A DNA stretch of 64,000 bases from Blepharisma stoltei ATCC 30299 (taxonomy: Eukaryota > Protista > Ciliophora): positions 1,116,001-1,180,000 of the forward strand of contig CBFDEM010000011.1 of assembly GCA_965603825.1 (NCBI GenBank). The letters run 5' to 3'. The notes under the pieces were generated by a model. It was not told the origin of the DNA. It made no database searches and saw only the letters and a list, made by a program, of their open reading frames with translations. Both the position numbers and the translations under genes were made by a program. Positions 5,412 to 62,873 of the stretch are shown here, piece by piece; the first letter of the stretch is position 1, and every line of letters begins with the position of its first letter.

Positions 5412-5448
5412 TTATAATATAAATTTTAAATGATTAAATTCGTTATAA

Positions 5449-23300: not shown

Positions 23301-26300
23301 TAAGTGCCAGCAGGGCATGGAAATTCTTTAGTAAAATGAGTGCCAATTGGGCAATAATACCCAGCAGCACATACTACTGGAGGGTTATTTACATAGTTCG
23401 TAGCATAGCCACAGGCAAAACCAGGAGGACATTGGTCACATTGGGCTAGACCATAAGCTCCATACATGGTACCGACGGTGCCTGGAGGACATGGGTTTTG
23501 GGTTTTGCGGGTCGAGCCCTCAGGGCAATAATAGCCAATTTCACATTTCATGATAGCTTCTACCATGCCTGCTCCTGGGCATGCATAGCCTGCAGGGCAG
23601 ACCCAGCAGCTGCTTAGAGGGTTTGCTTGGTATGGGCCAATTTTTCCTGGAGAGCAAGGAAGTGGCTGTGCTGAGCCCGAGCCACAGGAAGTCCCTGCTG
23701 GGCATAATAAGCAGTCTTCTATTTTATACTTTCCTGTTAATGGGTTATAAGTGCCTTCTGGGCATGCGGTAGCAGATGTGCTTCCAATCGGGCAAATTCT
23801 CCCTGCAGGACAAATGATAGGATTTCCGGTGCCTTCAGGGCAGTAGTAGCCTTCAGGACATTGTAAACAGTACCCTTCTGAAATAGCTCTAAGTTTTTTA
23901 TAATAAGTACCTTCTGGACAATTTGTGCCAGTAGATACCCCTGCTTCACAATATTTCCCTTGAGGGCAAGGGGAGTTTTCATAGTTTCCTGTGCCAGCAA
24001 TGCATTCATATCCTAATGGACAGTCAAAACAAAAAGTACTGTCATAAGCTCTGACAACAGCATTAAATTTTCCATCGCCGCATTTTGTCATTGTAGAAGA
24101 CCCATCACAGTAGTTGCCTGGCCAACATTCGAATCCAATCATATCAGGTCTATCTGCATTATCTGGCAGCCAGAAGCCTATAAATGCTGGACTTATAGTA
24201 TCTGAGCCAATATAAGAGTATTTGTTGGAAGTAGCATAATTGCCAGCGCCATCTTCTCCTCCTGGTATTGGATAGCACCATCCCCATCCTGATGAACAAA
24301 TAATATTGTCTTTCCAAGCATCATAAGATTTCACATAATCATCAACGTCTGTAGATGTTACAACGCTGCTTCCACTTGTCGTCAAACCTGGATAACCTGC
24401 TAAGGTAGTAGTTGACTTGCAATATGCTGAGCCTTCAACTGAGTCATAATCTGTTGCACAAGCTTTTGGCCTAGCGCTTGATCCAGTGCCTTCGCTGGCA
24501 GAACAATAATAGTGAGCAGGACATAGCTTACACACACTTTCTCCTGAAGCTCTGTATGTCCCTTCTGGGCAAATTCTTGTAGGTCCTTGGAATGGGTCGC
24601 ATTCCATATTGTCAGGACAAGTCGCACAACTAGCCATCCCAGCTAAAGAATAAGTCCCTGCGCTGCATGATGTATAGGTAACAGGGTTTCCGCTACAAGA
24701 AACACCAGCAGGACAAGGCACACATATATCAGGAGATCCTACTATTATATAGCCGCTCGGACATGCAACTGTAAAAGAGACTTCAGGGCCTGGAGCCATC
24801 TCACCAGAAGTAGGTGAACTGCAAGTACCTGAGCCTGGATCTGAGTACTGTCCTTGGACGCATCGCTGAATTTCATAGCCGCTTTGATTTGGGCATGAAA
24901 ACCCACCAGGACAAGCAAGACAAAATGAGTAATATTCATATGAGTAAGTCCCAGAGGCACAGCTTTGTGCAGTTTGAGTAGGATCTGCACAATATTGTCC
25001 TGCCTGGCAAGCTGTGCAGACCATATCATCTTGAGCTGAATAAGTGCCAGGAGGACATGGGACTGGTGTAGACCCCATACAATTGAACCCAGCTGGGCAT
25101 GTGCATTTCGGCCCATTTGGCCACGCATAAGGTGCATTTATACATATATTTGCCACAGAGACTACTATAGTAACACTGCTATATCCTCCACTAGAATCAG
25201 ATAAAGTAACAGTTACTGCTGTGTAAGGTGTGCTTCCCATCGAGCCAGCTGCAGCATATATAGTGGCCTGTTTAAATAATTTATAATCAGACGTCGTAAA
25301 GCTTAATGAAGAGGTCGTCAACGATAAATTTGTTGTATCTGAAGATGATATAGTCACAGTTACTGTTGACGATGGTTGTGAGGATAGTCATACATCAAAA
25401 GTCGCATATTGCTTACTTTGAACCAAAATAGCTAAGTTGCTCACTTTTATAGTAGGAGTACTTGCTGGAAGAATAACTGCTGTGGTGGTTTTATCTGAAG
25501 GATAAAATATTGCACTATTAAAATTTGAATCTGACGTAGAGACTGTATATGTAATAGTAGTGGTCTGATAAGGAGATGATGCACTTGAAGGGCCCGTTAT
25601 TAAAATCCTCTGTGTGCTCCAGCTTGATGACGTAAAAGTCACTTGGCTTGAGCTCAGTGTTATATATGAGTTACTTAATGTCATCGAAACTACTACATCT
25701 GACGATGGCGCAGCTCCAATTGAAATATAGAGCTGAGTGCTGTCTTTAGCTTGGAGGCCTACAGAAGAGTCTGCTTGAATATAATATTTAGTGCTCCCAT
25801 ATATTGGCACTGAAATTGAGCCTGAAGAAGCAGTTAAGCAAGTTTGGAAATTAGCAACACCGTTGTATGTGGAATCTGATGAAGAAATTGAGTGGATCAC
25901 ACCGATGTTGACAGGATAAGAAGTTGAAGCAAGCATCCCAGTATTGAAGTAAACTTTTTGAGCTGTGGCGTAGTTTGAATCTGTAAATGTAAGGGTAGTT
26001 GTAGTGATTTCTAAGGATGAGGAGTCTTTTGAGCTGATAGAGACGATCACATCGTATAGTGGTTTATCAGTTAAATATATCTGGTAATATTGGTTATAAG
26101 TCCCTTCAAAAATCGCATCATTCAAATTTATAGCAAGCTCTCCATTAGAATATGACGTCGCTGTAAAAGTTGTCGCAAATGCTGAATATCCTGAACAAAG
26201 AGCTTCGACTTCAACTGAGCCAGTTCCAGTATAAATTACATTGGAAAACGACAGACTGCCCAGATTAAGTGTTGCACTCCCGCCACTGCTTATTTGCCCA

Positions 26301-27122
26301 TTTCCTGATTTTGCTTGTAAGTAACACTTGATGCTGGAAACAACCTTATTTCCGCTTGAATCTGTAACAGTTGCCGTCACTGAAAATCCTGATCCTTTAT
26401 AAATAGTAGTCGGATAAGAGTTAAACGTTATAGATGACGGGGTTCCTGAAGATATTGTAAAAGAGCTGCTATAAGCGTCGCTCAGGCCTGAAGCGCTTGC
26501 CTTTAACACAAAAGTCCCAGCTCCGGTGACAGAACATGAGCTAAAAGTACTTACACCATTTGTAGCTGTCACTGAAACGCTTGACATTGTACCATAGCCA
26601 CTTCCAGGTATCAGACTCAACGTAATTGAGCTAGCAAAGGACGTATCCACAGTATTTTTACCTATAGGAGGGTTCAAAACCTGGACTATTACATCGCTGG
26701 AACAAGGGTCAGAAGCACTTGTAGGCTGAGCTGAAAAATAAAGCGTTTGAGAGGTGCCTGAAGTAATGTCAAAAGAGCTGCTGGACACAGAGCCGTAGCC
26801 TATTGCAGAAGCTATAAGTTTGTATCCGGTTCCGGTCTAAATTAGATTTTACTGTTGTAATGTAAAGATTACTAAAGGTAGCAGTGCTTGAGCTCGATGA
26901 AAAGGTCACTGCAAGATTTCCATATAAAATGACGCTGCTTGATGCAGTTGAAGGATCCAAGCTCAAATAGACCGAAGCTGTGTCACTTTGAGATTTTGTG
27001 ACTGTGACAGAAAATGTGGTATACGCCGTTGTCTACTTATAAAATACTGATGACGGAGTGCTAAATGACAAAGAAAGAGCCAATCCTCCTGGAACTAATA
27101 AGATCCAAAGAAAAAGAAGCAT
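14360..27122 (-). CDS. Giant type-I membrane protein (4243 aa): signal peptide, Ser/Thr-rich beta domains, GCC2/GCC3-type Cys repeats, single TM, long cytoplasmic coiled coil
   Basis: Start MLLFLWILLVPGGLA at 27122; introns 27033-27047 (15 nt) and 26837-26852 (16 nt); UGA=Trp at 25388-25390; dozens of CPxGxYCP repeats; TM WGIIAGIIVALIILIILIIGFLSFL. Confidence 0.9.
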
Positions 27123-27943
27123 ATTTATTATAAACATTTCGAATGTGATAAGATTAAAATAATCAGATTAATTAACATTGATTTTAAATCAGAAATGATG
27201 AGAGGGAATATAAATTTTGAAAATAGAATTGGCTTGCTTCTGTTTCTGAAGATAAACGATATAGGGGCAATGATGAAATATTTTTCTTGATACTAATAAG
27301 ATTTTTGTATGAAGATCTGAAATTGGAGAGGATTAGTGGCAAATAAGCAGAAGATTAGTTAAGCAGATTTAAAATTTTCAAGTACAAATTTGAAACTGTT
27401 GGAAATTTATAAAATGTTTTTATGAATTTTAATTAAATATTGAGATTTATAGAGTCAATTTTTGGGTAAAAAGAATTAGTCTGTTGAGTAATAAAATAAT
27501 TGGGAGAATAATAGTGCAGGATTTTATTTAAATTGTAATAATTTATTGTCTTTTATATTATTTATTCGCAAATTTATAAGTTTTCCTCTTCAAATTTATA
27601 GTAAACAGTCCTTTAGTAATAATTTTAGTTGATATTGATTCAGAATATATGATTGATACGAAGATAAAGGATATAATAAAACTTTAATAAAAAGGGTTTC
27701 TTATAAGAAGCTAGAAAATTAAGAGACTTATATAGCTATTTCAAGATAAATTAAATAGAATTATTTTTTAAATTAAAATTATTGTGATAATTGTTTATAT
27801 AGCTTCATATTAGCTATTTAAAAGAAAAAAGTGATATTCCATAAGATAATTTTAAGCTGAAATATATAATTTTATTCTATATAAGCTCCTTATATTTATA
27901 TATTTAAAAATACAAAAATTAAAACTATGAATCCGAATAAAAT

Positions 27944-28681
27944 ATGGGAAATTGCTGCAATGGAGGAGTTGACAGTGCTCAACCAATCTCCAAAAACGAG
28001 CCAAAAATCACAGAAACCCTTCCTCGAGAAGAACAAATCATCATAGAAAACGAAAAAAAATTAGAATTCAGCAAACTCAACAGCAAAGACATCATAAAAT
28101 CCCTAAAATCCGAAGGATCTCAAAATTGTTTAAGCATGCCTCAGCTAAAGCGAGCCTTTTTTGATCTCCAACTATCAGAAACTGACTTATCCTCCCCTGA
28201 TTCCGCCTTTTATAAAATCCTAGCCAAGCTAAAAAACGATAAAAAACTTTATGAAATACGTAAACTTGTATTGCTTGCCTTACTAGTAGGTAAAGGAGCA
28301 CCTCAAGATAAAGCAGTTTGGCTGTTTAAACAGTATGATTTAGACGCATCTGGGGTTATAGATGCAGAAGAAGTTGAAACTATGCTAAATGAGATGATAG
28401 ATCTTGCTGTAAATATTTTGCCATTATCGGCAAGAGGGGATGAGGAAGGTTGTCTGACAAAAGAAGAGGAAGATACATATAAGAGTATGCTGCTGGCTGG
28501 ACAACAAAGTATGGTTCAAGAAGTTATGAAGCTATTGCTGAATCAGAATGAGATTGGAGAAACAGAATTTGTGGCGAAAATATGCGACCCAAGCCAGCAA
28601 CTGAATAAGTTGCTTTGGAGCTATGGGGTTAGGCTGCTTTTGAAAAATTATGGAAATCATAACAATATTGAATCTCATTAA
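27944..28681 (+). CDS. N-acylated EF-hand protein (NCS/calcineurin-B-like), paralogue 1
   Basis: MGNCC N-terminus; KAVWLFKQYDLDASGVIDAEE EF-hand. Confidence 0.85.
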   Translation: MGNCCNGGVDSAQPISKNEPKITETLPREEQIIIENEKKLEFSKLNSKDIIKSLKSEGSQNCLSMPQLKRAFFDLQLSETDLSSPDSAFYKILAKLKNDKKLYEIRKLVLLALLVGKGAPQDKAVWLFKQYDLDASGVIDAEEVETMLNEMIDLAVNILPLSARGDEEGCLTKEEEDTYKSMLLAGQQSMVQEVMKLLLNQNEIGETEFVAKICDPSQQLNKLLWSYGVRLLLKNYGNHNNIESH

Positions 28682-29150
28682 ATCGCCTATGTTTTTACTA
28701 AGAAAACCTCTTTATATATATAAATTAAGTTTTCGCCATATCAATAGGCTATTTATACAATTAAGCCTAGCATAATAGTTAGCTTATATATTTTATTGAA
28801 TAAATTTTTCATATACTAAAAACCTTGCACATAACTAGATCTTACTCCATTCGAAATTGACAAAAAAAGCCCAAAAGGGAAATTTTTTTACACTATTTTA
28901 AATTATTATTACGAAGACTCATTCAATAAGTCCATCAATTCAAATTCCAGACTGTTTAAGTAGCATTTCCTCTATTAAATTGGTCAAAGCTGTTTAGATT
29001 TTTTTCATTGATAATTAAAAATTAAATTTGAAAGTGTTAAATTTCCTTATATTAAAATTAATTACCCATTAAGCATCCTTCCAAAATCAGCTAAATAAAA
29101 TATCATTTATATTTAATGGAATTTGAATAAGTAATAAGCAGTCAATAAAA

Positions 29151-29930
29151 ATGGGAGCGTGTTGCGAAGGAAGAGATGTTTCAAGCCAAGAAGCAAGGAA
29201 TGAGGTTGTTCATATTGGAAACACTGGAAGAGGGGCAAGCTTCAATCTTAAGGTAGCTGACAAGTCAAAGGTTCCTGATGCCCCTCCACGAGAAGAAGAA
29301 GTCATTGCAAGCAGCGAGAAAAAGCTAGAATTTTCAAAATTGAACAGCAAAGATATCATCAATGCCTTTACTGCAGAAGGCATGGAAGGGGTATTAAGCA
29401 GGCCACAACTAAAGCGCGCCTTTCTTAGCCTTGGATTGCCTGAAAATGACCTAACGTCTCCAGATGCGCCTTTTTACCAAATTTTAGCAAAAATAAAAAA
29501 TGAGAAAAAGCTGTATGATATTAGAAAAGTGGCTCTTTTAGGATTGCTATTAGGAAAAGGCTCAAACATAGATAAAGCACGCTTACTGTTTAAGCAATAC
29601 GATTCAGGAAGCTTAGGAAGCCTAGATACAGGAAAAGTCGAATTAATGGTCAACGAAATCATTGATTTATCAGTCAATATTATCCCTGATATTGCTATAG
29701 GAGAAGGCGCTGGATATTTGACGAGAGAGGAAGAAGACGCATATGAAGACCGCTTGCGTGCTCGACAGCAAAACACATTTAATGAGGTCAAAAGGATTCT
29801 TATTAGTGAAGGCCAATTGAGTGAGTCTGATTTTATAGTCAAAATGTCTGATTCTAAGCTGCCACTTTATAAGTTGCTATCAAGTGTAGGGACAAGAGCA
29901 CTTATCAGATCTCTATCTAATACCAACTAA
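29151..29930 (+). CDS. N-acylated EF-hand protein, paralogue 2 (degenerate EF loop)
   Basis: MGACC N-terminus; shares EKKLEFSKLNSKDII and PQLKRAF with paralogue 1; loop DSGSLGSLDTGK. Confidence 0.85.
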   Translation: MGACCEGRDVSSQEARNEVVHIGNTGRGASFNLKVADKSKVPDAPPREEEVIASSEKKLEFSKLNSKDIINAFTAEGMEGVLSRPQLKRAFLSLGLPENDLTSPDAPFYQILAKIKNEKKLYDIRKVALLGLLLGKGSNIDKARLLFKQYDSGSLGSLDTGKVELMVNEIIDLSVNIIPDIAIGEGAGYLTREEEDAYEDRLRARQQNTFNEVKRILISEGQLSESDFIVKMSDSKLPLYKLLSSVGTRALIRSLSNTN

Positions 29931-42367: not shown

Positions 42368-45300
42368 TTAATGGCTGAAAATGTATTTCAAAGGCGGGAG
42401 CTTCATATGAGTCCTATCTTCTGCTGAGACTGCATATAAGATAAGACAAACTGAAGTTTTTCCATCTGTTTTGTCTTCACTAATTTCTCTATATAGCTCA
42501 TAAACTTCTTTCTTGAATATTTCATCTTTATTACCTGCCATATATTTATTAAACAGACATTTAGTACCACAACCAATCTGTATCGCCAAAATCTTGTATT
42601 TTTCTTTTAAGTTCTCAATTAATTCTTCTATCGTGCAAGGCCCATCCACTACAATTTCATCCCATTTAGTAAAGCCATCATTATATGCTTTCTTAGGAGC
42701 TGCCAAAGTTTCATCATAATCTACAGATTTAATCATTATTGCAGGCTGAGGTTCGAGAAAAGAAAAATAAGAAATGGCCAAGTTCATAAAGCAATCCCTC
42801 ATTTTCTCTATTTCAAGCCCAAGAGTATATTTAATAAACTCAGCGACCACAATTCCAGCAATAACTGCAGTGGTTGTTGCGAGGGCTGGATTATTTTTCC
42901 AGCGATTACCTTGGTTTGGTGCCTTTCTATAGTAGAAATTCGGTAGTTATTTGCCCTCAAACTTGAAGCATTGTGGATAAAATCGATATGAAAATTGCTG
43001 TCATCATCTTTTTCAAAGGAAATTGGGGTCATAGGCTTGATATTTTCTAGTGAAAATCCTTTGAGCCAGCTTATTAGTTCTTCTTTTAATTTAATTTCAG
43101 CTTCTGATGCAGGCCGCTGCTCTTCATTATCATCTATTTTAATTTTTCTTGGGATAAATTCCTTAACCTGGACTTTAGACGCAATTTCTTTTATGTAATT
43201 TCTGTCTCTATTCTGAGGGATATTAAGGTTAAAGGCTAGCAAATTTGCATAGGATTCTATAAAGTCTATATGATTTTCTTTTTCTGTGTCAAAAATACAA
43301 GGCTCAGGCAGCCTCCTGGTCCCTGTCCAAAGATCTTTACCATGCTTGTCTTTTGTGCCGGGCGGACATTGATGTAGTAAAGACCTTATTTCTTCATAAA
43401 AAAGCTCATTAAACTTATGTCTTGCTATTATAATACAATCATCAAAGCTGCTTATCCCAGAAAGTTCTAAAAATTCTTTTAGCAGCTTTAACTGGGCCAT
43501 CTGCATATCAAAATGCCCAATACTTCCCAATTTTTGTAAATAAGCCTCTGGGTTTTCTAAATATTTATTCAACTCATCAGGGCCAGAGGTAAAGAAATCT
43601 GACAATTTTTCTCTTGACCAATCAATACAATGAGAAATTTCATATGGATAATGCTTCAAAGTGCATGATTTAGCTTTCGTTTCTGTTGGCTGTGGGGTAT
43701 CTTCATAGCTTTGGGTCAGATATGGAATGATTGCTTGGGAGTTTGCTTTTGTCCCTTCTGTTCCGCTTTCAAAAAGTGGCTTTTTGTAATAAACACATTT
43801 TCGGTCAATAAAAATTCGTGCACTGGCATTATCAACAGCCCCAAAAACTGCATTTAATTTCTCCCAAAACCTATCATTAAACAAGTTTTCTGTTTCTGGG
43901 CAAGCTCTGTTTTTCAAAGCAGTGACATTTATTTCTGGGTTCATGATTTTCGCTATCCTTGTAGCACATTCACTTTTGGATTGACCTACATTGGTAATAT
44001 TGAATAAAAACTGCCTTGTCAGGTTTGAGATTTCTACATTATCGTCGTCAGTGACTGTAAGCTCTCCAGTCCCACAGCAAACTCCGGATAATGCAAAAAG
44101 CTTTAAAAATTCGCAGCCTAAAGCACCAGATCCGACCATAAATAAATTGGCTGATTTAAGCTTGTTTAGTCCTTCTTCTCCTATAATTGCTTGGAGATCG
44201 TGATATCTTGAGTCAGAAATACTTGCAGATGGCTGAATTAGCTCAAACCAGTCCATATGTAGCCACTGCTGGATTGGGGTAAATTTTCCTGTGAATTTTA
44301 TGACTTCTTGAGCTGCAATTCCGCCAAATATTGATGTGATTGGAGAAATTTGTAGCCTTGCGTATTTTGAGACGTTTTTAATGACAGATTCATCAATTGT
44401 TTCTAATGAAAAGTCTTCTGAGGCTTCATTAATTTCTCTTGCATAAGCCACACAAAGATTTGCGTGGTCCTCATTATGGATTTCAGGAAGAAATCCGTGG
44501 ATTTCTTGGAATTTTCTGATAGCAAGCATGGCTAAATGTAAATTGGCAGGTCTGTTTTCTTTTAAGTAATCAACATGCATAAAAGGCTTTAATCCTTCAG
44601 GATTTTTAATAGAAATTTCATAAGGCCGGAAATCATAATGGAAAGGTTTTCTTACTTCTTCAACTGTCCCATATTTTATATAATCAGGGTAATCTGTGGT
44701 ATCTTCATCTATAGAAAAGCTGTGCGGGTCAATATAAGTGACCTTTCGTTCTCTGCCATCATTAAGAGGAGTCATTCCTTCGACTTCTTTGAACTTTATG
44801 TAGTCTCCGTCCTGAAACCAATGCTTGTCCTCATCATTTAGCTTCACAACTCCAGGATTGCTTCTGCTTATATTTCCAACCAAGTACGTTCTTAAGGCTG
44901 ATCCATTTTTGTCAGAAATTTCAAAATTATCCCCAAAATCTACAAAAACGTGCCCAGCTGTCCCCCATGTTTCGACAGACACAAATCCAACCTGTGGGCT
45001 TAAGTCTCGGCAAATGGAGTTAACCCTTATAAGTGTGGCACTATCACTTTCAGTGAGAAGGACTAAAGAGTGTTGAGAAATGACTTCTCGAGTAATTTCT
45101 CCTCTGTGGATATTTACTGAGACATTTGGGTTGAGCGCTTGAAGCTTGGAGATGACTGATTCAGCTCGATTTTGGCTGACATGGGATTCATTTATGAAAA
45201 AATTGGTCCCTAAATCGGAGAGAGAAATTATAGCATCATCATGCAAAGTGACTGTATGGAGGCCAGCTAATATTAAGTTTTTAGCGACTTCAAGACCAAC

Positions 45301-45405
45301 CCCACGGAGTCCAGAAACTAAAACGCGTAAGGTGAAAAGCTTTTTTTGAGTAGCCATACCGATGGCAGCAATAGAGCGTGAATAGAGATTATCTTGATTT
45401 GACAT
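42368..45405 (-). CDS. UBA1-type ubiquitin-like activating enzyme E1-A (about 1012 aa; 1-nt frameshift near 42888)
   Basis: LYSR, GLRGVGLEVAKN, GSGALGCE, DDDNVEISNLTRQFLF, catalytic KSCTLKHYP (Cys codon 43663-43665), FEKDDD..HIDFI; restoring one C gives GKIIPALATTTA, joining the UFD ORF 42368..42850. Confidence 0.92.
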
Positions 45406-45889: not shown

Positions 45890-46330
45890 TTATCCCATAG
45901 CATACTGCTGAGTCCACTCTCTTGCCCTTTGGTTATATAAGTCCATGTTTTGAGCGCACAATGTATTAATTTCAGTTGAGAACCCGTTTGGACTAGGGTT
46001 ATACAATAGTGCTATCACATAAGAGATTACAGTTCTTACAGTGACTTTTGGCTTCCATCCAGAATTAAAGATTTCGCAGCAAATACGGCCATCAGAAGGA
46101 TGTACGTTCGGGTGGAAAATTTTCGTTTTGAAATAGAAGGTCGGAGGGCTCGCAGGGAAATTTGAAGGGAAAGTTATTTCGAACTTGAACATACCACCTT
46201 CATAGGGGCTCTCATCAGGACCGTTTAGAGTTCCTCTCCAGTGAAATAGTGATTGATCTACTAAATTTACAGTGATGCAAGGCTCAGGTATTTCTAGAAG
46301 ATTGTTAAATTCATTCGTGAGTCGCTCCAT
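45890..46330 (-). CDS. Divergent UBC-fold conjugating enzyme E2-1
   Basis: W..GP.ESPYEGG.F, FHPNV..DGRICCEIF. Confidence 0.95.
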   Translation of the reverse strand: MERLTNEFNNLLEIPEPCITVNLVDQSLFHWRGTLNGPDESPYEGGMFKFEITFPSNFPASPPTFYFKTKIFHPNVHPSDGRICCEIFNSGWKPKVTVRTVISYVIALLYNPSPNGFSTEINTLCAQNMDLYNQRAREWTQQYAMG

Positions 46331-46969: not shown

Positions 46970-47404
46970 TTATTTAGCAAAATCAGCCGTATATCGCTTT
47001 GCCTCTCTTTCATAAGCTGATACATTGGCTCTCATAGTATTGCATGCATCATTAACGTATCCTTGCTCAGGGCACGGCTCAGCTAGTAAATGGCAAATAG
47101 CACAAAGGACAGCTCTCATTGATATTCCAGGTCTCCAAGCAACGCTTAATATTTCGGAGCATACTTTACCCTCAGAATTCACATTTGGATGATAAATCCT
47201 TGTACGGAAGAAAAACTCAGGGGGAGATACTGGGAAATTGGAAGGGAAAATTATATCAAAGCGGAAGTTTCCACCTTCAAAAGGAGTTTCTGGAGGACCA
47301 ATTAATAGACCATTCCAGTGCAGCATGTCTTGACCTAGGTTAATTTCGATTCCTTTGATAGGATTTTCCATGAGTTTATTGAATTCTTGTAATATTCTAT
47401 CCAT
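46970..47404 (-). CDS. Divergent UBC-fold conjugating enzyme E2-2
   Basis: GPPETPFEGG.F, YHPNVNSEGKVCSEIL. Confidence 0.95.
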   Translation of the reverse strand: MDRILQEFNKLMENPIKGIEINLGQDMLHWNGLLIGPPETPFEGGNFRFDIIFPSNFPVSPPEFFFRTRIYHPNVNSEGKVCSEILSVAWRPGISMRAVLCAICHLLAEPCPEQGYVNDACNTMRANVSAYEREAKRYTADFAK

Positions 47405-47868: not shown

Positions 47869-50142
47869 ATGCCTACAAGAAAAGGCTCACTTTCATGAGC
47901 TTCAAAGGCAGCTATTTCTATTATTGAATGCAATAAAGATCGACTATGTATCGATCCAAATTCGCCAATAGGCAAATTATTAGCAGATTTTGAATCAAGC
48001 TTGGAGTTTTTACCATTTAGGGAAGAAAAATTCGTAGTTAATATTCTTGAATATATTTCTAAAAATTACGATCCAAAATACTTCGAAACAGTTCAAGATT
48101 CCAATATCAACGTAAAATATCTTAAAAAAAAAGATGAAGAAACTTACTTTTTTGAACAAATAAAAGCTAAAGAAGCACCTTTAGTTTTACTTAAAAGGCA
48201 TAGTGAGGATAAACCATATGCTTATTTTGAAAGAAACAATGGAACTGTTTATTTATTAACAGCGCTTTTTACTCAAAACGTGTTGAAAAGATTATATTGC
48301 AATTTCGGAAACCAATGGAAAAATCTCAGTGAAAACCCAGATGATAAAACACCAATAAAATTCAGAGAAGAAACTGTATACATTTATACAAAAATCAATA
48401 AAGAAGATCTTGATAAAGAAAAGGTCGATAAAATTCTTCCGTCCGAATGAGAAGGACATATAAAAGAAAACCTGCGAGAGTCTATAACAATATATTCCGT
48501 TAGCACAAATCAAAACCAGGCTGGGATAAAAATACCAAAAGATATTGAAGCTCAGCAGGAGTTAAAGCAAAAAATCCAAAATAAAAATGATGAAATACAA
48601 AATTATAAAGATCAATTAGAGAAATCAAAAATTGAAAATGAGAAATTAAAAGAAACCATAAAAAGTTTAAGTGGCGAAAAAGAAAAAAATATCGAAATTC
48701 GTCAAGGGCTAATAAATGAAAATGAGAAATTAAGAGATCTCATAGAAAATTTAAATGTGAAAATAAACGAAAAAAATGCTGATATCAGTAAAGAATTGCA
48801 AAAAAGTAATTCAGCCCAACAAGAATTAAGCAAAAATATCCAAAATAAAGAGCAGATGATAGAATATTATAAAAATCAATTATCATGTTTGGAAAATGCA
48901 AACGAAAAATTGCAAAAAGAGCTAAAAATAATAAATGATGAATTAAAAGAAAAAAACATCAAAATTGATTCGCAAAATCAAGAAATTCTAAATAGAGACG
49001 ATATAATTAAAAACTATAAAGAACAATTTGAGGAACTTACAAACGAAAGAAATAAATATCAAAAAGAAATAAAAGAACTGAAAATTGAACTTCAAAAAGC
49101 AGTAGATGAAAATATAAATTTGTCTGCAATTAATGCAATTCTACAGAAAGAAGCTGAAACCGAAGCTCAATCATTAATCCAAGTAAAAGAAATTTATAAA
49201 ACTCAAAACGAAGCCTTAGTTCAAGAAAGGGAAAATCTTCAGCCTCAATTAAAAGCATTAAGTGAAGAAACTAAAGAATTCAAATCAATAAGCCTGCCTC
49301 CTAGGATTATAAGACGTCCAATAATTTATGACGGGAAAAAATCAGGGATTCCTAATATAGGGAATACCTGCTATCTTAATTCACTTCTTCAATTGCTTGC
49401 GAGCAACAATGAATTTTACGATAAAATCCAGCCTATCGAACATGAATTATTTTCTTCGTTATCCTCACTATTAAAGAGCATCAGAAATCCTGGATCCTAT
49501 AATAATACCGATCAACTTGTTAGGTCCTTTAAATACCAACTTGGTGCAGAATTCCCAATGGTAACCTTTATATAGCTTGGAAATTCATCTCAGCAAGATT
49601 CTAAAGAAGTAATGGTGATGCTGACAGGCATACTATCAGAATTAACTAATATAGACTCTATTTTTACAACTATCTATAAACAAATATTTAAATGCCATGC
49701 TTGTGGAAACAAAGCTAATAGGGATGATACAAATATTTTTATTACAGTTCCCAGGGGTAAATCTCGCTCTATACAAGAATTTTTACCAATTTTAAAACAG
49801 CCAAAATATTACACCGGAAGTAACCAATTATTTTGCGAGAATTGTCAAAATATGCAAAATATCACGATGGAGTGTGAAGAAATAATTTGGCCATCTACAG
49901 TTACCTTTTACCTGCCCTCGAATAATGGGAGTACTAAGATTAATGAAGAATTAAATATTGAAGGAACTACTTATAGATGGTATGGATTAATATGCCATTA
50001 TGGAAATTCACAATTTGGACATTATAAAGCATATACGTGGGATACCAAGAATTGGACTGAATATAATGATTTCAGTGCAAAAATTGATAAAGTCGATGTG
50101 GCAAATGGCTATCTAGCCTTTTATGCAAGGGCTGAGAGTTAA
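47869..50142 (+). CDS. USP (peptidase C19) deubiquitinase USP-1 (752 aa): N-terminal domain, coiled coil, catalytic domain
   Basis: ATG 47869; UGA=Trp read-through; GIPNIGNTCYLNSLLQ; intron 49561-49575 (GTAACCTTTATATAG) then QQDSKE; HYGNSQFGHYKAY..WTEYND. Confidence 0.9.
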
Positions 50143-51878: not shown

Positions 51879-52160
51879 AAATTATTAATAATTTTAAAGA
51901 ATGAGTAACAGGGTGTTAGCAGAGCAATAGAAGTCTATAAAAATTGGAAATATTCATTATTATCAGAAAAAATAGCTGATATTTGTAATGTACCTCAAGA
52001 ACAGCAGATGATTACTTTCGAAACGAGAACATTGAGTTTAGCACAGCATAGAGACAAAACCTTAGGTGAATTGGGAATGCAAAATAATAAGATAGTCAAT
52101 GTTATGCATAGGTTCATTGGAGGCAAAAAGAAAAGTTTGGATATTATTTGAATTAATTAA
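51879..52160 (+). pseudogene. Ubiquitin-like modifier UBL-C (disrupted 5' end), GG + 11-aa extension
   Basis: Frame 51909-52160 QGVSRAIEVYKNWKYSLLSEKIADICNVPQEQQMITFETRTLSLAQHRDKTLGELGMQNNKIVNVMHRFIGG-KKKSLDIIWIN*; in-frame TAA 51906-51908 and no in-frame start ATG. Confidence 0.7.
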
Positions 52161-52421
52161 AAATATTTCCTCAATAAATTGTATGCACTTTTTATCAATT
52201 GTTTGACGAAAACTAATTGTTGCTTCTTTAAAAAAGATCAAACTTTGCCCGCCCTAATTTATATCAGATCTATTGAAGCTCTAATTCTTAATTTAATAAT
52301 TCAGCTTTTGAAACCCTGTTTTTGGTTATTTCTTATCCATTTTAAATTATCAACAGCTGAATTAATTTTTAACAAAATTCTACAATTTAGGACCTAAATT
52401 TTAGAACTCTATAATTATTAA

Positions 52422-52687
52422 ATGTCAACCTGGACGATAAGAATTGAAGATAAGGAAGGAAATTCACGCTCAATGCAAGTAAATAGCTCTTGAACTTATG
52501 CTCAACTCCACGGAGAGCTTTTAAATTGCTTCAGAATCGAAATGCAACTCCAACTGTGATTTATAATAATAATACTGGGGACAAGTATTTGAATTTGGAG
52601 AGATCAGGTGGACGCACTTTGGAACAGCTGGGCTTTCGGAATAGCTGCTTAGTTAAACTTCTTGAGAAAATGAGAGGAGGAAATTAA
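52422..52687 (+). CDS. Ubiquitin-like modifier UBL-A precursor (about 88 aa, ends MRGG-N; 1-nt deletion at 52523-52525)
   Basis: MSTWTIRIEDKEGNSRSMQVNSSWTYAQLHGELL/KLLQNRNATPTVIYNNNTGDKYLNLERSGGRTLEQLGFRNSCLVKLLEKMRGGN; AAA here versus AAAA in paralogue UBL-B. Confidence 0.8.
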
Positions 52688-53143
52688 GCTAATTTATATT
52701 TATAAGTGTGAGTTTTAATATAAAATTAAAGTTATCATTGATTTTTTATCAAAATTGCATTTTTAAAGCATATAAAGGACTAGACACATGCGCTCTCGAG
52801 TTTATTATGCAGGATAATTAATTAGTTAAAAAAATGAATAGAATTCATCACTTCAGTTTTGACGATAATGCTCTATTTTGACAAAATTTAGTCTTTTTAG
52901 ATTTTTATAAATTTATAAAAAGTCTTGCAATTATGCTTACCTCCAAGCAAAATTGTTGTTTCTCTAAAAAAGATCAAACTTTGTCTATCCCAAATCAATT
53001 AAATCTCTAGTTCTCTATATTAATACCTTGCTTTTAAAACCCTGCTTTCATTTATTTATTATCCATTTTATCTATTAGCAGCTCAATTAATTTTTAAAAT
53101 TCTACAATTTTAAACAAAGATTTTAGTATTTTATAATTATTAA

Positions 53144-53398
53144 ATGCCTACCTTGACTATAAGAGTTGAAGATATGGAAGGAAATGTACGCATACAGCAA
53201 GTAGATAGCTCTTGAACTTATGCTCGACTTCACGAAGAGCTTTTAAAATTGTTTGAGAATCCAAACTCAACACCGACTGTGATTTGCAATAGTAAGTATA
53301 TGAACTTGGCGATATCAGGTGGACGTACTTTGGAAGAGCTGCGCTTTGAAAACAACTGTTCACTCCAACTTCTTGAGAAAATGAAAGGGGGAAATTAA
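53144..53398 (+). CDS. Ubiquitin-like modifier UBL-B precursor (84 aa, ends MKGG-N), intact
   Basis: With UGA=Trp: MPTLTIRVEDMEGNVRIQQVDSSWTYARLHEELLKLFENPNSTPTVICNSKYMNLAISGGRTLEELRFENNCSLQLLEKMKGGN*; beta-grasp pattern, GRTL motif, di-Gly. Confidence 0.88.
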
Positions 53399-53879
53399 GC
53401 TAATTTATATTTAAAATTATGAGTTTTTACATAAAATTAAAGCATCTCGAAAATGGGCTTAGTATTGAATTTTCATTAAAAATTGCATTTTTATAAAGGA
53501 ATAGGTAATATGCATTCTCGAGTTTATTAGAATTAAATATTAAAAAATAAATAGAATTCATCACTTCAGTTATTGACGAAAATTATCTATGTTGCCAAAT
53601 TTAATTTCTCTAGATTTTTATAAATTTATAATATCCTAGACTTGACTTTCTATGTAATAAATTCTCCTTACCTTTCCTTAAAAACATCAAATTTATAAAT
53701 AGATTTTACCACTCATATAGCACAAATTCATGCTGCAGGCTTAGAATACTTTTATTAGTATAAATTTTCAAGAAATATATCTTATCAGTGCAAAGGGTAA
53801 GATAATAAATCCAAAGCGTCATGTTCCTTAAAAAATCAAAATTTTAAATAGACAAAAGTTGGCTTTGGTATATATAAAC

Positions 53880-54928: not shown

Positions 54929-55921
54929 TTATATAGAATTACCTAATTTTAAATAAAAAAGTATATAAGCATGATTATAGTCAGGAGGATCTTCTGTCAC
55001 AAAAGCGTCATTAAACTTATACCATTTTCCATTATCACAAGTATAAGCAATATAGTGGCCACATTGCCCGCCTCCATAATAGCATATTAAAGCATATAGT
55101 CTATAGTCACTTTCCTGGAAATTTATTTCTGTCTCAAGTTTTCTATTCTTATTCGAAGTATCAGTAACATAAAATACCAAAATTTCTGGCATTTCTAAAG
55201 AATCTACTGCGATTGTAGAGCTGGTTATTTCCTGACAAACTTCGCATTGCAAATTTAATTTATCTTTTTTGCTTTTTATGTTTTCTAAACATATTTTTGC
55301 ATTTTATTTATCCTTTGGAGCTATAATAAAAAATAATGATTTATCTGATTTTATAACTTTATGGCCTTTCTGGCATGTAAAAGTTTGGTTTTTTGTGATC
55401 TGAAATCTTTTTTCCTCATGGCTAAATTCTTGTATATATATATCTATTAGAATATTATAAAGCTCTTTACAGTCGTTCTGGGCATTAAGTTCGTACTAAA
55501 TATTGTTTACCGTAGGAAATTTTTCTTTAAGTGTATTTAAAAAATTTATAATGCCTGGTTTAAAATCACTTGATGAGATACGGGAAAGCATAAGGTAAAA
55601 AATTATTAATAAATTTCTGAATAAAATGGTGTTAGATTTCGATATGAAATCTACAAAATTTGGAGTGCTTGCTAGAACTTGGAGTACAGAATTTAAATAG
55701 CAGGTATTTCCATAGTTAGGAATTCCACTCTTTCTAGAGCATTGATTTCCAAAAGACAAATTTTCTAGCTCTTGATAATCTCTAGAGTCCTTTAGCTTTT
55801 TGTTTTGTTTATTTTTACGATTTCTCAATCATGCTACTAGTTTTGGGAAAAAATAAATAATAACTAATATTGCAACTATATATCCTCCTCTTTTAGCAAA
55901 ATACTTAATATCATAGCTCAT
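54929..55921 (-). CDS. USP deubiquitinase USP-2 with N-terminal TM anchor (325 aa)
   Basis: MSYDIKYFAKRGGYIVAILVIIYFFPKLVA-W(UGA)-LRNRK; GIPNYGNTCYLNSVLQ; intron 55496-55510 then AQNDCKE; GGGQCGHYIAY..WYKFND. Confidence 0.9.
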
Positions 55922-56440: not shown

Positions 56441-56873
56441 GATAATAAAATATATATAGAAGAATAGCTAGATAAGCTTTGAGTGCAAAATTATCAGATT
56501 CAAAGATATAGTCAGAATCAGTGTCTTGCATGCTCTTTCCCGATATTTCAATGTAAAATTTACCTAAAAGTTGGGTGTAAAATCAGCTAATTTTTGATAA
56601 TTTATAAATCATTCCATTAATATAGATATAATCGAAATATAGAAATTCAATTGATAAATAAATATTCTTAAAAATCCACCTTAATGCATATGTGTAATAT
56701 TTTTCTATTGTTTTGATAATTAAGCTCAATTCTTTATTATAGAGAATTAAACCTAAATGCAAAATAATAACCTTTGTTTAATAATCTGATAAGCTATGTT
56801 TATATAAAATCTTACGATTTCATATCTCCAGCAGCAAATAATTAAAATGTCTATTATAATTCTATAAATTTAT

Positions 56874-58939
56874 ATGTCAGAAGAGCTTAAAAAAGCAGTT
56901 TATATTCTTGCAACGATCAATCAGCATATAAAATTTCCTTTCAAAAATCCATGTTTAAGCAAAATTTTTCAAAATGCTTTTACCTCAGGCATTGATAATG
57001 AAGATCTTAGACTACTTGAAAAATACACATTGCCATTGCCAAGCTTTGATAGCGCATATCATATTGTAAAGGATATCATTAGATTCCAGAAATGAGAAGA
57101 TATTTTTGCTTGGCCGAACAAATTATTGCAACCATTTCAAGTATCTGACATACCTAAAAAAATTCAAAAAGTTGCATTTTTTTGCGTTTGCACTAATAAG
57201 GATTATATAGAGGAAATAGAAGGCTACAACTTAATTGTAAAACTTGTTCTACCTGAAGGGATTTTACAATGTAAATACTGAGAAGAATGAAAGAGCTGCT
57301 CATCTTCTCAGGAAATGGACAAAAATAGTAAGCCTAAAATCTATTCCGCAATTTTTGGCTTTGTTAAAAACTGAGGAGTGATTCCAAAAAATGAAGAAAC
57401 GGCAGAGAATGAAATAGAAAAAGTGGAAGATGAAGAAGCAAGAATAGAAAAAATTGAAGATAACCCTCAATATTTTGAAGAAAATGATACTAAAAATATA
57501 AATGCGGACCAAATAAATGAAAAATTCAAACAAATAGAAGAGCTATCTAAATGCAAACAAAGCAATGAAAGCAATGAAAGCCTCCAAGCTGAGCTAATAA
57601 GAGTAAAAATTGAAAATAAAAAAGCGTGCAATGATATAAGTGAAATAAAAGCAATGATAGAGGACGTGAGAAATTCTTTGAATGAAAAAATAGATGAGAC
57701 TAACATAAATTTAAAAAAAGTTTAAATTATTTAAAAGAAGGACTAGATAAAGATCAATTATTTATGGAAAATGTCCTTGAAAATTGCCAAAGTAATTTAA
57801 ATCAACTTAAGTATTACAGAAATAGCTCAAATTATGCACCAAAAAATAAAAATCGCGATTTTTCTTTAAATTTTAATGTTGTTTCTGATAATTTTCAATG
57901 CATCAATCAAACTGTTCAAGATTATATCCAAAAATTCAATCAACTGGAAATTAAATGCAATTCATTAGTAGATATATGCAATAAAATGATAATTGAGAAT
58001 GATAGCAAAGATTCATCATTAAAGGCGAAAATTGATGAAATTGAAGAAAAGATCAAGAAAGTTTCAATATCAAATGGAAATGAATTAATTTCAAGCCCAA
58101 AAAATGCTCCTGACTTAAAAATTATAAATAACAACACTCCAAAAAGGAAAAAAAGGGGGTTAACCAATATAGGGAATAGTTGCTATCTGAATTCAGTTTT
58201 ACAGATCTTTGCAAGTGTTCAAAATTTCGTAGAAAATATAAGAAACATTGAGAATGACTTATTTTATTGCTTAGGTGATGTACTATCGTCGATAACAGAT
58301 CCCTACTCTATAAAAATAGACGAAAAATTAAGAAAACTAAGAAAATTGGTTACTAGCGAATATCCTATGGTAATTTATATATAGTTTGATGGAAATAAAG
58401 AAAATAGTTGCGAAGAATTATATACTATCATAATAAATATATTTATGGAATTTTGCCATAGTGAAATGTTTTTAATAAACAAAAATCAAGCGATAATTTG
58501 TGAAAATAACCACAGGTCAGAATTACCTGAGCATCAACTATTTTTAACTATACCCGATAATGAATTGTCATTTGTAGAATGGCTAAATCAGCTTGAAAAT
58601 GAGAAAAAATTATTTAGTGGAGATAATAATTTATTCTGTGAAACTTGTGGACAGAGATCTGACTCAGAGATTGTGACAGAAAGAATTGAGACTCATGAAA
58701 TTTTAGCTTTTTATAATGGCAAAAGTAAAAATTTGATTGAAAATGCTCCTAATTCTGTTTCTTTAGGGGAAAATCAGTATGAAATATTCGGAATAATTGT
58801 GTACAGTGGAAGACACTACATAGCTTATACAAAAGAAGAGGGAATTTGAAATGAGTATAATGATAATGAAGTCACAGCAAATAAGCATCCAAATCCAAAT
58901 AATAGCTATATGCTGTTTTATAAAAAAACTTACAATTAA
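56874..58939 (+). CDS. USP deubiquitinase USP-3 (about 683 aa; 1-nt deletion in A-run 57713-57719)
   Basis: UGA=Trp joins ORFs; GLTNIGNSCYLNSVLQ; intron 58370-58384 (GTAATTTATATATAG); YSGRHYIAY..I-W-NEYND..YMLFYKK. Confidence 0.85.
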
Positions 58940-59083: not shown

Positions 59084-59521
59084 TTAAACTGCATAAGTCT
59101 GCGTCCACATCCTAGCTACATTTTCATATGCTTCTTTATCAGCATTTCTGATTGTCGTGGCATCATTAAGGTATCCATCCTCAGTGCTAGGTTCACTCAT
59201 GAGTACACAAATACTGTCAATGATCGACTCTACTGTTGTTGCACTTTGCCACTTGTAATTTAATAGCATCGTACAAGCTTTGCCATTCGAGTCCACGTTT
59301 GGGTGGAAAATAATCGTTTTGAAGTAAAATTCTGGAGGACTTTGAGGGAAGTCTCGAGGGAAAAGAATCTCGAATTGGAATCTTCCACCTTCAAAAGGAG
59401 TTTCTGGAGGTCCTATTAGTATCCCACCTCAGTGATAGAAATCATTGTCGATTAAATGGACTGATAATCCGTCGGTTGGGTCTTCACAGATCTTTGCGAA
59501 ATCAGCCTGGAGCTTTTGCAT
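59084..59521 (-). CDS. Divergent UBC-fold conjugating enzyme E2-3 (145 aa)
   Basis: MQKLQADFAKICED..FYH-W(UGA)-GGILIGPPETPFEGGRF..FHPNVDSNGKACTMLL; the UGA aligns to the conserved Trp of E2-1/E2-2. Confidence 0.93.
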
Positions 59522-59846: not shown

Positions 59847-62800
59847 ATGTCAAGTCAAGATCATCTCTATTCGCGCTCAATCGCTGCTATTGGGATGGCG
59901 ACTCAAAAAAAGCTTTTCACCATGCGAGTCTTGATTTCTGGTCTCCGAGGAGTCGGTCTGGAAATCGCTAAAAACTTGATCTTAGCTGGCCTCAACACAG
60001 TAACTTTACATGATGATTCTGTAATTTCGCTCTATGACTTAGGGACCAATTTCTACATAAATGAGTCTCATATAAACCAAAATCGAGCTGAATCAGTCGT
60101 CTCCAAGCTCCAAGAGCTCAACCCAAATGTCTCAGTTAGCATCTACAAAGGAGAAATTACCCAAGAAGTTATTTCTCAACACTCATTGGTGATTCTTACA
60201 GAAAGTGACAGCACCACGCTCAGAAGGGTGAATTCCATTTGTAGAGAGCTAAATCCTCAGGTAGGCTTTATATCTGTTGAAGCCTGAGGAGTGACTGGAC
60301 ATATTTTTGTAGATTTTGGGGATAGTTTCGAAGTTTCTGATAGAAAATGGACAGACTTGAAGAGCTATATTATTACCAATATAAGCAAAAGCAATCCTGG
60401 AGTTATAATGATAGAGTTGAGGCAAAGACAAATACTTCAGACTGGAGACTATGTAAGGTTCAAAGATGTCGAAGGAATGACTCCTCTTAATGATGGCAGA
60501 GAAAGAAAGGTCACTTATATAGGCCGGGACAGCTTTTCAATAGATGAAGACACCACAGAATACCCAGATTATATAAAATATGGAATAGTTGAAGAGGTCA
60601 GAAAACCTTTCCATTATGATTTTCGGCCTTATGAAGTCTCTATAAAAAATCCTGAAGAATTAAAGCCTTTCATACAGTCTGATCACTCAAAAGAAAACAG
60701 GCCTTCCCATCTGCATTTAGCTATGCTCGCAATCAGAAAATTCCAAGAAGTTCATGGATTTCTCCCTGAAGTCCACAATGAAGACCACGCAAACCTCTGT
60801 GTGACTTATGCAAGGGAAATCATTGAGGCTGCTTCACAAGAGATTTTTATAGATGCAGTTGACGATACCATCATTAAAAGCGTCGCAAAATATGCAAGAC
60901 TGCAAATTCCTCCAGTTACTTCTATATTTGGAGGAATTGCAGCTCAAGAAGTCATTAAATTCACAGGGAAATTTACTCCAATCCAGCAGTGGTTACATAT
61001 GGACTGGCTTGAGCTGATTCAGCCAACTGCAAGCATTGTTGACTCAAGATATCATGATCTCCAAGCAATAATAGGAGAAGAAGGACTAAACAAGCTTAAA
61101 TCAGTCAATTTATTTATGGTCGGGTCTGGAGCCTTGGGCTGTGAATTGTTACAGCTTTTTGCATTATCTGGAATTTGCTGTGGGGATGGAGAACTTACTG
61201 TCACTGATGACAATAATGTAAAAGTCTCCGATTTGACAAGGCAGTTTTTATTCAACTTGACTAATGTGGGGCAATCCAAAAGTGAATGTGCTACAAGGAT
61301 AGCGAAAATCATGAACCCAGAAATGAATGTCACTGCTTTGAAAAGCAGAGCTTGCCCAGAAACAGAAAACTTGTTTAACGATAGGTTTTGGGAGAAATTA
61401 AATGCAGTTTTTGGGGCTGTGGATAATATAGCTGCACGAATTTATATTGACCAAAAATGTGTTTGGTATAAAAAGCCTCTCTTTGAAAGTGGAACAAAAG
61501 GGACAAAAGCGAAATCTCAAGTAATCATTCCATTTTTAACCCAAACATATTCAGATATCCCATGGAAGCATGAAAAGAAAATCTTAACGGATAATCTATA
61601 TTTTCCATATGCAATTTCTCACTGTATCGAGTGGTCTCGAGAAAAATTGTTAGATTACTTTACTTCTGGTCCTGGAGAGCTAAATAAGTACTTGGAAAAC
61701 CCTGAGGCTTATATGCAAAAACTACGAAGCATGAACAATGCTGGAACACAAGTTGTCCAGCTAAAACAACTTAAAAAATATTTAGAGCTTTCTAAAATAA
61801 GTAGCTTTGATGATTGTATTGCTACCGCAAGACATAAGTTTAATAAGCTGTTTAATGAAAAAATTAGAACCTTATTACATCAATTTCCCCCTGGTAGTGA
61901 TTTTTGGTCAAGGACTAGGAGATTGCCTGAGCCTTGCATTTTTGACACAGAAAAAGAAAATCATATAGGCTTCATAGAAGCTTATGCGAATTTGGTAGCC
62001 TTTAACCTTAACATCCCACAGAATAGAGACAGGAATTACATAAAAGAAGTAGCGTCTAAGGTCCAAGTTAGGGAGTTTGCCCCAAAAAAAGCCTATATGA
62101 AATTAGACGATAATGAGGGCCAGCAGCCAATCGAAAAATCTGACATAGAATTAAGAGAAGAATTGCTGAGTTGGGTCGAAGAATTTTCATTAGAAAATGT
62201 CAAGCCAATGACACCAATTGCATTTGAAAAAGATGATGATACTAATTTCCATATTGATTTTATCCACAATGCTTCAAGTTTGAAGGCGAATAATTTCAAA
62301 ATTTCTACAATAGAAAGACACCAAACCAAGGTTAGTGCTGGAAGAATCATCCCAGCTCTGGCTACAACAACTGCAGTTATTGCTGGAATTGAGGTAATTG
62401 AATTTATTAAATATACTATTGGGCTAGAATTAAAAAAAATGAGGGATTGCTTTATGAATTTGGCAAGCCCGCTTATCCTTTTTCCAGAGCCTCAGCCTGC
62501 AATAGTGATTAAATCTGTTGAATATGATGAAGTTTTTGCTGCTCCCAAGAGGGCATATAATGATGGCTTTACCAAATGGGATAATATTGTTATTGATGGG
62601 CCTTGCACAATGGGAGAGCTAATCGGCACTTTGAAAGAAAAATACAAGGTTTCACCATTACAGATCGCCTGTGGAAAGTTCTGCTTGTTTAATCACTATT
62701 CAAGAGATAATAAAGATGAGCTGCTTAGAAGAGAAGTTTATGAGCTATATAAAGAAATTAGTGGAGACAAAACAGGGGGTAAAAAGTCGATTGGTCTCAT

Positions 62801-62873
62801 GTTATATGCAGTCTCAGTTGAAGATAAAGCTCTAATGATGTTTCCACATTTGAAGTATATTTTCAGTCATTAG
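59847..62873 (+). CDS. UBA1-type E1-B (1008 aa), lacks the canonical catalytic Cys
   Basis: UGA 60285-60287 aligns to Trp of E1-A VETWG; closely similar to E1-A throughout; KILTDNLYFP replaces KAKSCTLKHYP. Confidence 0.92.

Follow-up and report, generated by a model that had tools for sequence, protein, structure and literature searches.

A probable ubiquitin-derived modifier family and its clustered enzyme genes in the ciliate Blepharisma stoltei

Ubiquitin-like proteins (UBLs) that are specific to one lineage and have an E1 enzyme of their own are few. ISG15 and FAT10, both of vertebrates, are such proteins, and a good deal has been learnt from them about the discrimination of modifiers by E1 enzymes. 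The gene considered here, UBL-B, lies in a window of 64,000 nucleotides from the ciliate Blepharisma stoltei (contig CBFDEM010000011.1, positions 1,116,001 to 1,180,000; coordinates below are those of the window), among genes for E1, E2 and ubiquitin-specific protease (USP) homologues. It was pointed out, with a tandem copy, UBL-A, in an earlier note made from the letters of this DNA. The best explanation of the locus, and in our judgement a probable one, is that UBL-B encodes the precursor of a small ubiquitin-fold protein, whose fast-evolving family is descended from ubiquitin and belongs to a lineage-specific modifier system that evolves by birth and death of genes.

The ISG15 system of vertebrates, in which UBA7, UBE2L6 and USP18 act, resembles this locus in its general plan: a lineage-restricted, fast-evolving derivative of ubiquitin is accompanied by a UBA1-derived E1, a UBE2-type E2 and a USP. 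ISG15 is also among the fold matches of UBL-B, and P0004, a B. stoltei relative of UBL-B, has two UBL domains with Gly-Gly on the second only. There is, however, no sequence relationship with ISG15 beyond the fold, and the ciliate genes are physically clustered. The tandem two-domain layout of ISG15 and FAT10 is found in P0004, whereas UBL-A and UBL-B have a single domain. FAT10, which works with UBA6 and USE1, is likewise a divergent UBL handled by a UBA1 paralogue, and UBA6 is the second-best class of solved structure for E1a, one of the E1s described below. In contrast to the genes here, FAT10 is a two-domain protein of vertebrates, and the strongest of these matches for E1a is with UBA1, at 616 bits, compared with 514 bits for UBA6 and 466 bits for UBA7.

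NEDD8 and SUMO share the fold, and the Gln found at tail position 72 of the Blepharisma proteins P0003, P0006 and P0007 is the SUMO state. Their E1s are heterodimers, however, whereas those encoded here are single-chain enzymes of UBA1 type, and there is no match at the Pfam level to Rad60-SLD or to NEDD8-like ubiquitin sequences. With ubiquitin itself UBL-B shares a predicted β-grasp with the same order of strands, a tail of the pattern basic-hydrophobic-basic-Gly-Gly, a precursor in which Gly-Gly is followed by Asn in exactly the form of yeast Ubi4 (PMC8122580), and the proximity of UBA1-type E1, UBE2D-like E2 and USP genes. It differs in that the residues aligned with Lys48 and Lys63 are not lysines in the alignment examined, that position 72 is Lys or Gln in the family rather than Arg, and that the UBL genes are single and tandem, with no polyubiquitin or ribosomal fusions, are found in one genus and encode proteins with only ~20% identity to ubiquitin.

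UBL-B and its relatives

UBL-B is a genuine gene of B. stoltei. The earlier note had called it an intact 84-residue open reading frame (ORF) missing from the ORF track. The frame is indeed open over its 84 codons, and a standard or bacterial translation table lists only the last 49 of them, as a 49-residue fragment; but the protein is already public, the unnamed entry P0001 of NCBI and UniRef being identical to it over all 84 residues, with Trp at the TGA. P0001, P0003 and P0004 have 24 columns without variation, the terminal Gly-Gly included, and UBL-B retains every one of them.

The reading of TGA as Trp is supported from several sides. ORFs in the window are markedly longer once TGA is taken as sense (our scripts translated it as Trp or showed it as X). 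A TGA in the E1b gene is aligned to a Trp of E1a; the TGA of E2c falls inside an H-W motif for which E2a and E2b use TGG; and the TGA of the UBL genes coincides with a Trp that is invariant in the family. Stretches of 15 nucleotides (nt) with the form GTAA..TAG, containing stops, interrupt the three USP genes at one shared position, and relatives of the window proteins are labelled Blepharisma stoltei by NCBI. According to the genome paper for B. stoltei, UGA encodes Trp, introns measure 15 and 16 bp, and the genome was assembled with Flye from HiFi data (PMC9942806). Since the sense TGA, the 15-nt introns, the B. stoltei-named relatives and the genome paper all agree, the window is part of a B. 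stoltei macronuclear contig.

The C-terminus of UBL-B, KMKGG-N, is as first described. Its designation as non-canonical does not survive, as a single residue after Gly-Gly is the textbook form of a ubiquitin precursor: yeast Ubi4 ends in GG-Asn and an Entamoeba monoubiquitin in GG-Tyr (PMC8122580). The accompanying claim, that this residue needs to be removed before activation, is sound, and is the same for all such precursors.

A full HMMER (phmmer) pass over 1.84 billion representative proteins found only three true relatives of UBL-B, to which a word-indexed profile search added two. The four with a named source (P0003, P0004, P0006 and P0128) are all from B. stoltei, and the fifth, P0007, comes from an MMETSP transcriptome, probably of Blepharisma; the apparent restriction to this genus is defined by one phmmer search with a divergent member and one word-indexed profile search. 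The paralogues match UBL-B with E = 1e-12 to 1e-16 in the set of 1.84 billion proteins, so that chance likeness is excluded. The top HMMER match, P0002 (1766 residues), is a repeat protein that hits a short stretch 15 times and was discarded as spurious. A word-indexed search with a 60-residue piece from the C-terminal part of UBL-B found no protein other than the one encoded in the window.

The relatives differ in their numbers of domains. P0003 and P0006 (82 residues each) and P0007, a complete ORF of 83 residues, all end in QMKGG-F and are ~90% alike, as judged by eye in the alignment; UBL-A and UBL-B are 48-50% identical to them. The species sampled in MMETSP include Blepharisma japonicum. 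P0007 and the paralogues suggest a transcribed family that is conserved beyond B. stoltei. P0004 has 181 residues and two UBL domains, of which the second alone ends in Gly-Gly (MVGG followed by six residues). The single-domain members UBL-A, UBL-B, P0003, P0006 and P0007 and the last domain of P0004 thus share the ending M-(K/R/V)-G-G followed by a short tail, and the family would have, as in type-I modifiers, a flexible tail, a Gly-Gly and a removable extension. P0128 (235 residues) comprises three 77-residue UBL units fused in series; Gly-Gly is absent from the joints, and the chain terminates in K-G-C. Each of its joints is five residues short in comparison with the single-domain genes, that is 15 nt, the size of an intron, and its gene model may have had 15-nt stretches removed as introns.

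The accessions of P0003, P0004 and the E1 paralogue P0009 (CAG9316440, CAG9316450 and CAG9316463) fall within ~23 entries of one another, and a second set (CAG9324177 and CAG9324193) within 16. This suggests a second, perhaps duplicated, locus of UBL and E1 genes that holds P0003, P0004 and P0009.

The β-grasp fold proposed in the earlier note is borne out, by prediction. An AlphaFold2 model of UBL-B, made from an alignment of six rows, has a mean predicted local distance difference test score (pLDDT) of 79.2 and a predicted template modelling score (pTM) of 0.66. It has strands at residues 3-9, 15-21, 45-48, 51-53 and 72-77 and a helix at 26-36, in the order β-β-α-β-β-β, and the last five residues form a disordered tail with pLDDT < 50. 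Foldseek comparison of the model with the PDB gave 365 matches at E <= 0.001. The best of these were ubiquitin and designed ubiquitin variants, SUMO1, NEDD8 and ISG15, with template modelling (TM) scores of 0.75-0.79 and ~20% identity to ubiquitin.

At the sequence level these proteins lie far out on the margin of the ubiquitin family. UBL-B scores 13.3 bits (E 0.075) against PF00240, below the cut-off of 25.4, its residues 5-80 lying on profile positions 2-71/72, and the paralogues score 14-19 bits; all are sub-threshold, with PF00240 recurring as the best or near-best match. The last 28 residues of UBL-B align to ubiquitin without a gap, with G-R-T-L, two Leu and the terminal Gly-Gly identical, so that the GRTL motif noticed at the outset is indeed common to the two proteins. 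The link is strengthened by UBL-0, a more ubiquitin-like ORF upstream of UBL-A. UBL-0 passes the PF00240 cut-off with 26.8 bits, and in hhalign the family profile matches it over 70 columns with a probability of 93.6% and E 2e-7, the terminal Gly-Gly and the Trp being aligned. Because the family profile matches UBL-0 and UBL-0 passes PF00240, the family is tied to ubiquitin. Taken together, the steady sub-threshold scores, the C-terminal alignment and the UBL-0 bridge make the statement that the UBLs do not resemble ubiquitin too strong. Some E values of 1e-7 to 1e-9 against polyubiquitin chains were not accepted; they are the sum of nine weak repeats, a single ubiquitin giving E ~0.7-0.9.

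Might UBL-A and UBL-B simply be fast-evolving orthologues of a known modifier, such as ubiquitin, NEDD8, SUMO, URM1, UFM1, ATG8/12 or HUB1? Ubiquitin, SUMO, NEDD8 and ISG15 are not told apart by the fold search, and UniRef names one paralogue Rad60/SUMO-like. Nevertheless, no family member reaches any Pfam threshold: alongside the 13-19 bits for PF00240, Rad60-SLD (PF11976, cut-off 23.8 bits) gives no match for P0001, P0003, P0006 or P0007 and only 13.8 bits, for one domain, in P0004. The family profile finds nothing in the PDB sequences at E <= 1, the linked E1 is not of the heterodimeric SUMO or NEDD8 type, and the family has several paralogues, some of them with two or three domains. Simple orthology of this kind is very improbable.

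The enzyme genes around the UBLs

The UBL genes are enclosed in a cluster of ~20 kb (Table 1) that encodes two UBA1-type E1s, three UBE2D-like E2s and three USPs. Between 42.4 and 62.9 kb the order is E1a(-) E2a(-) E2b(-) USP1(+) UBL-0(+) UBL-A(+) UBL-B(+) USP2(-) USP3(+) E2c(-) E1b(+). The earlier note had linked the UBLs to USPs, whose presence it explained by the need to remove the residue after Gly-Gly. Three USP genes do adjoin the UBL genes, and processing of the GG-N ending by such enzymes is plausible by analogy; the E1 and E2 genes, which are more telling, had been missed.

Table 1. Features of the UBL cluster, in window coordinates
Feature	Position	Strand	Description
E1a	42368..45405	-	UBA1-type (ThiF, FCCH, 4HB, SCCH), catalytic Cys kept; one frameshift, UFD in another frame
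E2a	45890..46330	-	UBC-fold, HPN and catalytic Cys; best solved match UBE2D2, only 122 bits
E2b	46970..47404	-	UBC-fold, HPN and Cys; 44% identical to E2a
USP1	47869..50142	+	Coiled-coil N-terminal part and USP catalytic domain, Cys and His boxes; 15-nt GTAA..TAG intron 49561-49575
UBL-0	51901..52160	+	More ubiquitin-like ORF upstream of UBL-A; Gly-Gly and 11-residue tail holding a TGA; no in-frame ATG
Two tandem units, ~722 nt each	52215..53631	+	Gene and both flanks, 76% identical over 725 aligned positions
UBL-A	52422..52687	+	Tandem copy of UBL-B, 4-codon insertion and one frameshift, 266 nt; KMRGG-N in second frame
UBL-B	53144..53398	+	Intact, 84 codons and TAA, one TGA (Trp) at codon 24, C-terminus KMKGG-N
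USP2	54929..55921	-	Short USP, hydrophobic N-terminus, 15-nt intron 55496-55510; one in-frame stop between Cys and His boxes
USP3 catalytic part	57704..58939	+	15-nt intron 58370-58384
E2c	59084..59521	-	UBC-fold, TGA in H-W motif; HPN and Cys
E1b	59847..62873	+	UBA1-type, open 1008-codon frame (P0010), 75% identical to E1a

Both E1 genes carry the full set of UBA1 domains (two ThiF, FCCH, 4HB, SCCH and UFD), the UFD of E1a being in its second frame; the public E1a protein, P0008 (865 residues), runs into unrelated residues. The two genes differ at the active site. The catalytic Cys occupies a column that is at least 95% conserved among 112 UBA1s, and it is kept in E1a and in the paralogue P0009. 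E1b has Asp at this column of the P-x-C-T motif, with no Cys codon nearby in any frame; the change involves a 3-nt difference in length from E1a as well as substitutions. Both Asn residues of the nucleotide-binding motif S-N-L-N-R-Q are also changed in E1b, which could be a pseudo-enzyme.

A protein of this kind could bind a UBL without transferring it, and E1b therefore bears on the idea that UBL-B is an unconjugated ubiquitin-fold protein, whether a binding module, a decoy for USPs or E1, or a regulator. The joints of P0128 without Gly-Gly, its end in K-G-C, and the first domain of P0004, again without Gly-Gly, are in keeping with such a role. We consider it quite improbable for UBL-B, however, because the retained M-(K/R/V)-G-G with a short removable tail characterises conjugated modifiers and seldom persists in other proteins, and because the tail is disordered in the model, as it is in ubiquitin.

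In 184 alignment columns, conservation among the 112 UBA1s reaches 95% or more. E1a deviates at 25 of these, E1b at 30 and P0009 at 17, compared with none for each of three Stentor UBA1s. In these alignments E1a, E1b and P0009 are a divergent, long-branch clade of UBA1. The three have 15 deviations in common, among them those at Ser and Asp in the S-x-D-P-P-E stretch that precedes the catalytic Cys; we take this stretch to be the crossover loop of Uba1 structures. A negatively charged pocket in the crossover loop recognises the Arg72 of ubiquitin, and residue 72 separates ubiquitin, NEDD8 and SUMO for their respective E1s (PMC12355090). All three Blepharisma enzymes have lost the acidic residue of this stretch, which would form the Arg72 pocket in canonical UBA1. 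At this position of the tail the Blepharisma family has Lys in UBL-A and UBL-B and Gln in P0003, P0004, P0006 and P0007. The change in the E1 loop and the residue in the UBL tail would fit a co-adaptation of E1 and modifier. The 120 top-ranking relatives of E1a, which include P0011-P0033, also contain unnamed sequences with 58-79% identity to Stentor UBA1.

The three E2s are 42-44% identical to one another, and their scores against UBE2D2 are no more than ~120 bits. The USPs, whose exons were searched one by one, keep their Cys and His boxes; the stop that interrupts USP2 is a plain TAA. Ahead of the USP3 catalytic part lies an ORF (56868-57725, + strand) of 285 codons with four TGA, rich in sequence like that of coiled coils. 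Its end falls within seven consecutive A, at the point where the frame of USP3 opens in a different phase. The ORF may be a gene in its own right or, with one frame change, the N-terminal region of USP3.

Duplication, breakage and decay

UBL-A and UBL-B lie in two tandem units, and their coding identity (82%) is no higher than that of the flanks (75-82%). UBL-A had been described as a tandem copy with a four-residue loop insertion that ends in LLEKMRGG-N. The duplication, the insertion and the GG-N ending are all present, but the gene also contains a frameshift, and the protein as it was written out is not encoded. Its 266 nt, compared with 255 nt in UBL-B, are not a multiple of three, its two halves are in different frames and were compared separately, and its public annotation, P0005, runs on into unrelated residues. 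A tiny intron was considered as the cause of the frame change and rejected: the excess in length fits neither 15 nor 16 nt, and no GTA..TAG is present. Over 69 codons, comparison of UBL-A with UBL-B gives a ratio of nonsynonymous to synonymous rates (dN/dS) of 0.63.

UBL-0 is probably a relic or a mis-modelled gene. A nearby ATG, from which translation would begin with the M-S-N of the family, lies in a different frame, and a 15-nt GTAA..TAG stretch adjoining it does not qualify as an intron, since no tool predicts it and the ATG would stay out of frame. A further degenerate copy suspected near 54320 was supported by neither blastn nor tblastn.

Could the whole cluster, UBL-B included, be a decaying duplicate of a system located elsewhere, at the locus of P0003, P0004 and P0009? 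UBL-B would then be a young pseudogene without function. This is the main rival to our explanation, and the condition of the cluster gives it substance. There is one break in each of UBL-A, UBL-0, E1a and USP2, E1b lacks its catalytic Cys, the dN/dS is 0.63, the coding sequence is no better conserved than its flanks, and UBL-A and UBL-B are far less similar to P0003, P0006 and P0007 than these are to each other. UBL-B itself does not share this condition. Its frame of 84 codons is open in DNA of 29% GC, for which our own estimate from base composition gives a random chance of ~0.4%; its invariant columns are complete, and the β-grasp model is confident. The three E2s, USP1 and the catalytic part of USP3 are also intact, and the dN/dS would be inflated if UBL-A alone is decaying. 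On balance we regard the decay of UBL-B together with its neighbours as unlikely, though a serious contender.

The same breaks can be seen in the opposite light, as errors of assembly in UBL-A, UBL-0 and E1a, in which case the cluster would be fully functional, with three UBLs and a working E1a. Each gene has a single frame change, which in UBL-A and UBL-0 lies inside a short single-base run, and the frames on either side of the change are open and homologous. The assembly was made from HiFi reads with Flye (PMC9942806). Against this, HiFi consensus errors are rare and three within 10 kb would be unusual, and neither the loss of Cys from E1b, with its 3-nt difference and substitutions, nor the TAA of USP2 resembles an indel error. 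Two public records appear to carry one assembly, and so give no independent check. An intact cluster hidden by errors is also unlikely.

Several points weigh against our preferred explanation, that UBL-B is the precursor of a modifier in a lineage-specific system. The evidence for UBL-B comprises its sequence, its relatives, a predicted fold, and gene linkage to E1, E2 and USP paralogues. Both E1s of the cluster look impaired, E1a by its frameshift and E1b by the loss of the catalytic Cys. Activation would therefore need the break in E1a to be an assembly error, or would depend on P0009 or another E1. The correspondence between E1 loop and UBL tail is correlative and drawn from three enzymes. 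The best 120 relatives of E1a include no canonical UBA1 with a B. stoltei label; for this reason the divergent clade may have to act on ubiquitin as well, and the case for a dedicated E1 is the weaker for it. The dN/dS of 0.63, with coding sequence kept no better than flanks, is as compatible with relaxed constraint as with rapid adaptive evolution. The second locus, finally, is read from the numbering of accessions.

Elsewhere in the window, an exceptionally long frame, open over 4158 codons and with one TGA, extends over 14360-26836 on the - strand, and a 3675-residue piece of it gave no Pfam match at E <= 0.001. The GC content is 42-46% across ~18-26 kb, compared with 27-37% in the rest of the window. 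Two further pairs of tandem paralogous ORFs are found at 4971-6483 (+) and 27941-29930 (+); one of these pairs shares the motif K-R-P-R-E..I-[KQ]-A-F-T-S-L-V-S, and the other starts with M-G-x-C-C, which is like an acylation motif. Rfam and tRNA scans of the window gave no matches, and nothing found in it is similar to viral, toxin or human sequences. A literature search for Blepharisma with ubiquitin or ubiquitin-like gave nothing relevant, and ubiquitin is unmentioned in the supplement of the genome paper (PMC9942806).

A possible pathway and its meaning

How might UBL-B act, if it is the modifier precursor that we propose? By analogy with known type-I modifiers, a cysteine protease of USP type would remove the single residue that follows Gly-Gly. 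An E1 of UBA1 type would adenylate the exposed glycine and then load the UBL onto its catalytic cysteine, from which a UBE2D-like E2 would pass it to lysines of target proteins, and USPs could take it off again. The likeliest actors would be the divergent E1, E2 and USP paralogues that adjoin the UBL genes in this cluster and, it appears, at another locus. The present cluster is undergoing turnover by duplication and decay. Processing, activation, conjugation and the matching of E1 to UBL are all inferred.

A more ambitious view of the locus can be put forward tentatively, as a possibility that we hold with some doubt. Blepharisma may have a private, ubiquitin-derived tagging system, with modifiers of one, two and three domains, a UBA1-derived clade of E1s in which the loop that reads Arg72 has been remodelled to suit these modifiers, and E2s and USPs of its own, all encoded in operon-like clusters that turn over by duplication and decay. 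If so, it would be a protist counterpart of vertebrate ISG15, with a possible role in conflict, mating or nuclear development. Beyond that, it would provide a rare instance of functional gene clustering in a eukaryote, with all four classes of enzyme and modifier adjacent.

The locus has significance at other levels also. It is a reminder that ORF tracks made with the standard code hide genes in genomes where UGA is Trp. If the match between the E1 loop and the UBL tail is real, it would constitute a natural experiment in the co-evolution of E1 and modifier. Should it not be real, the locus would still be a clear example of the birth-and-death evolution of ubiquitin-system genes.

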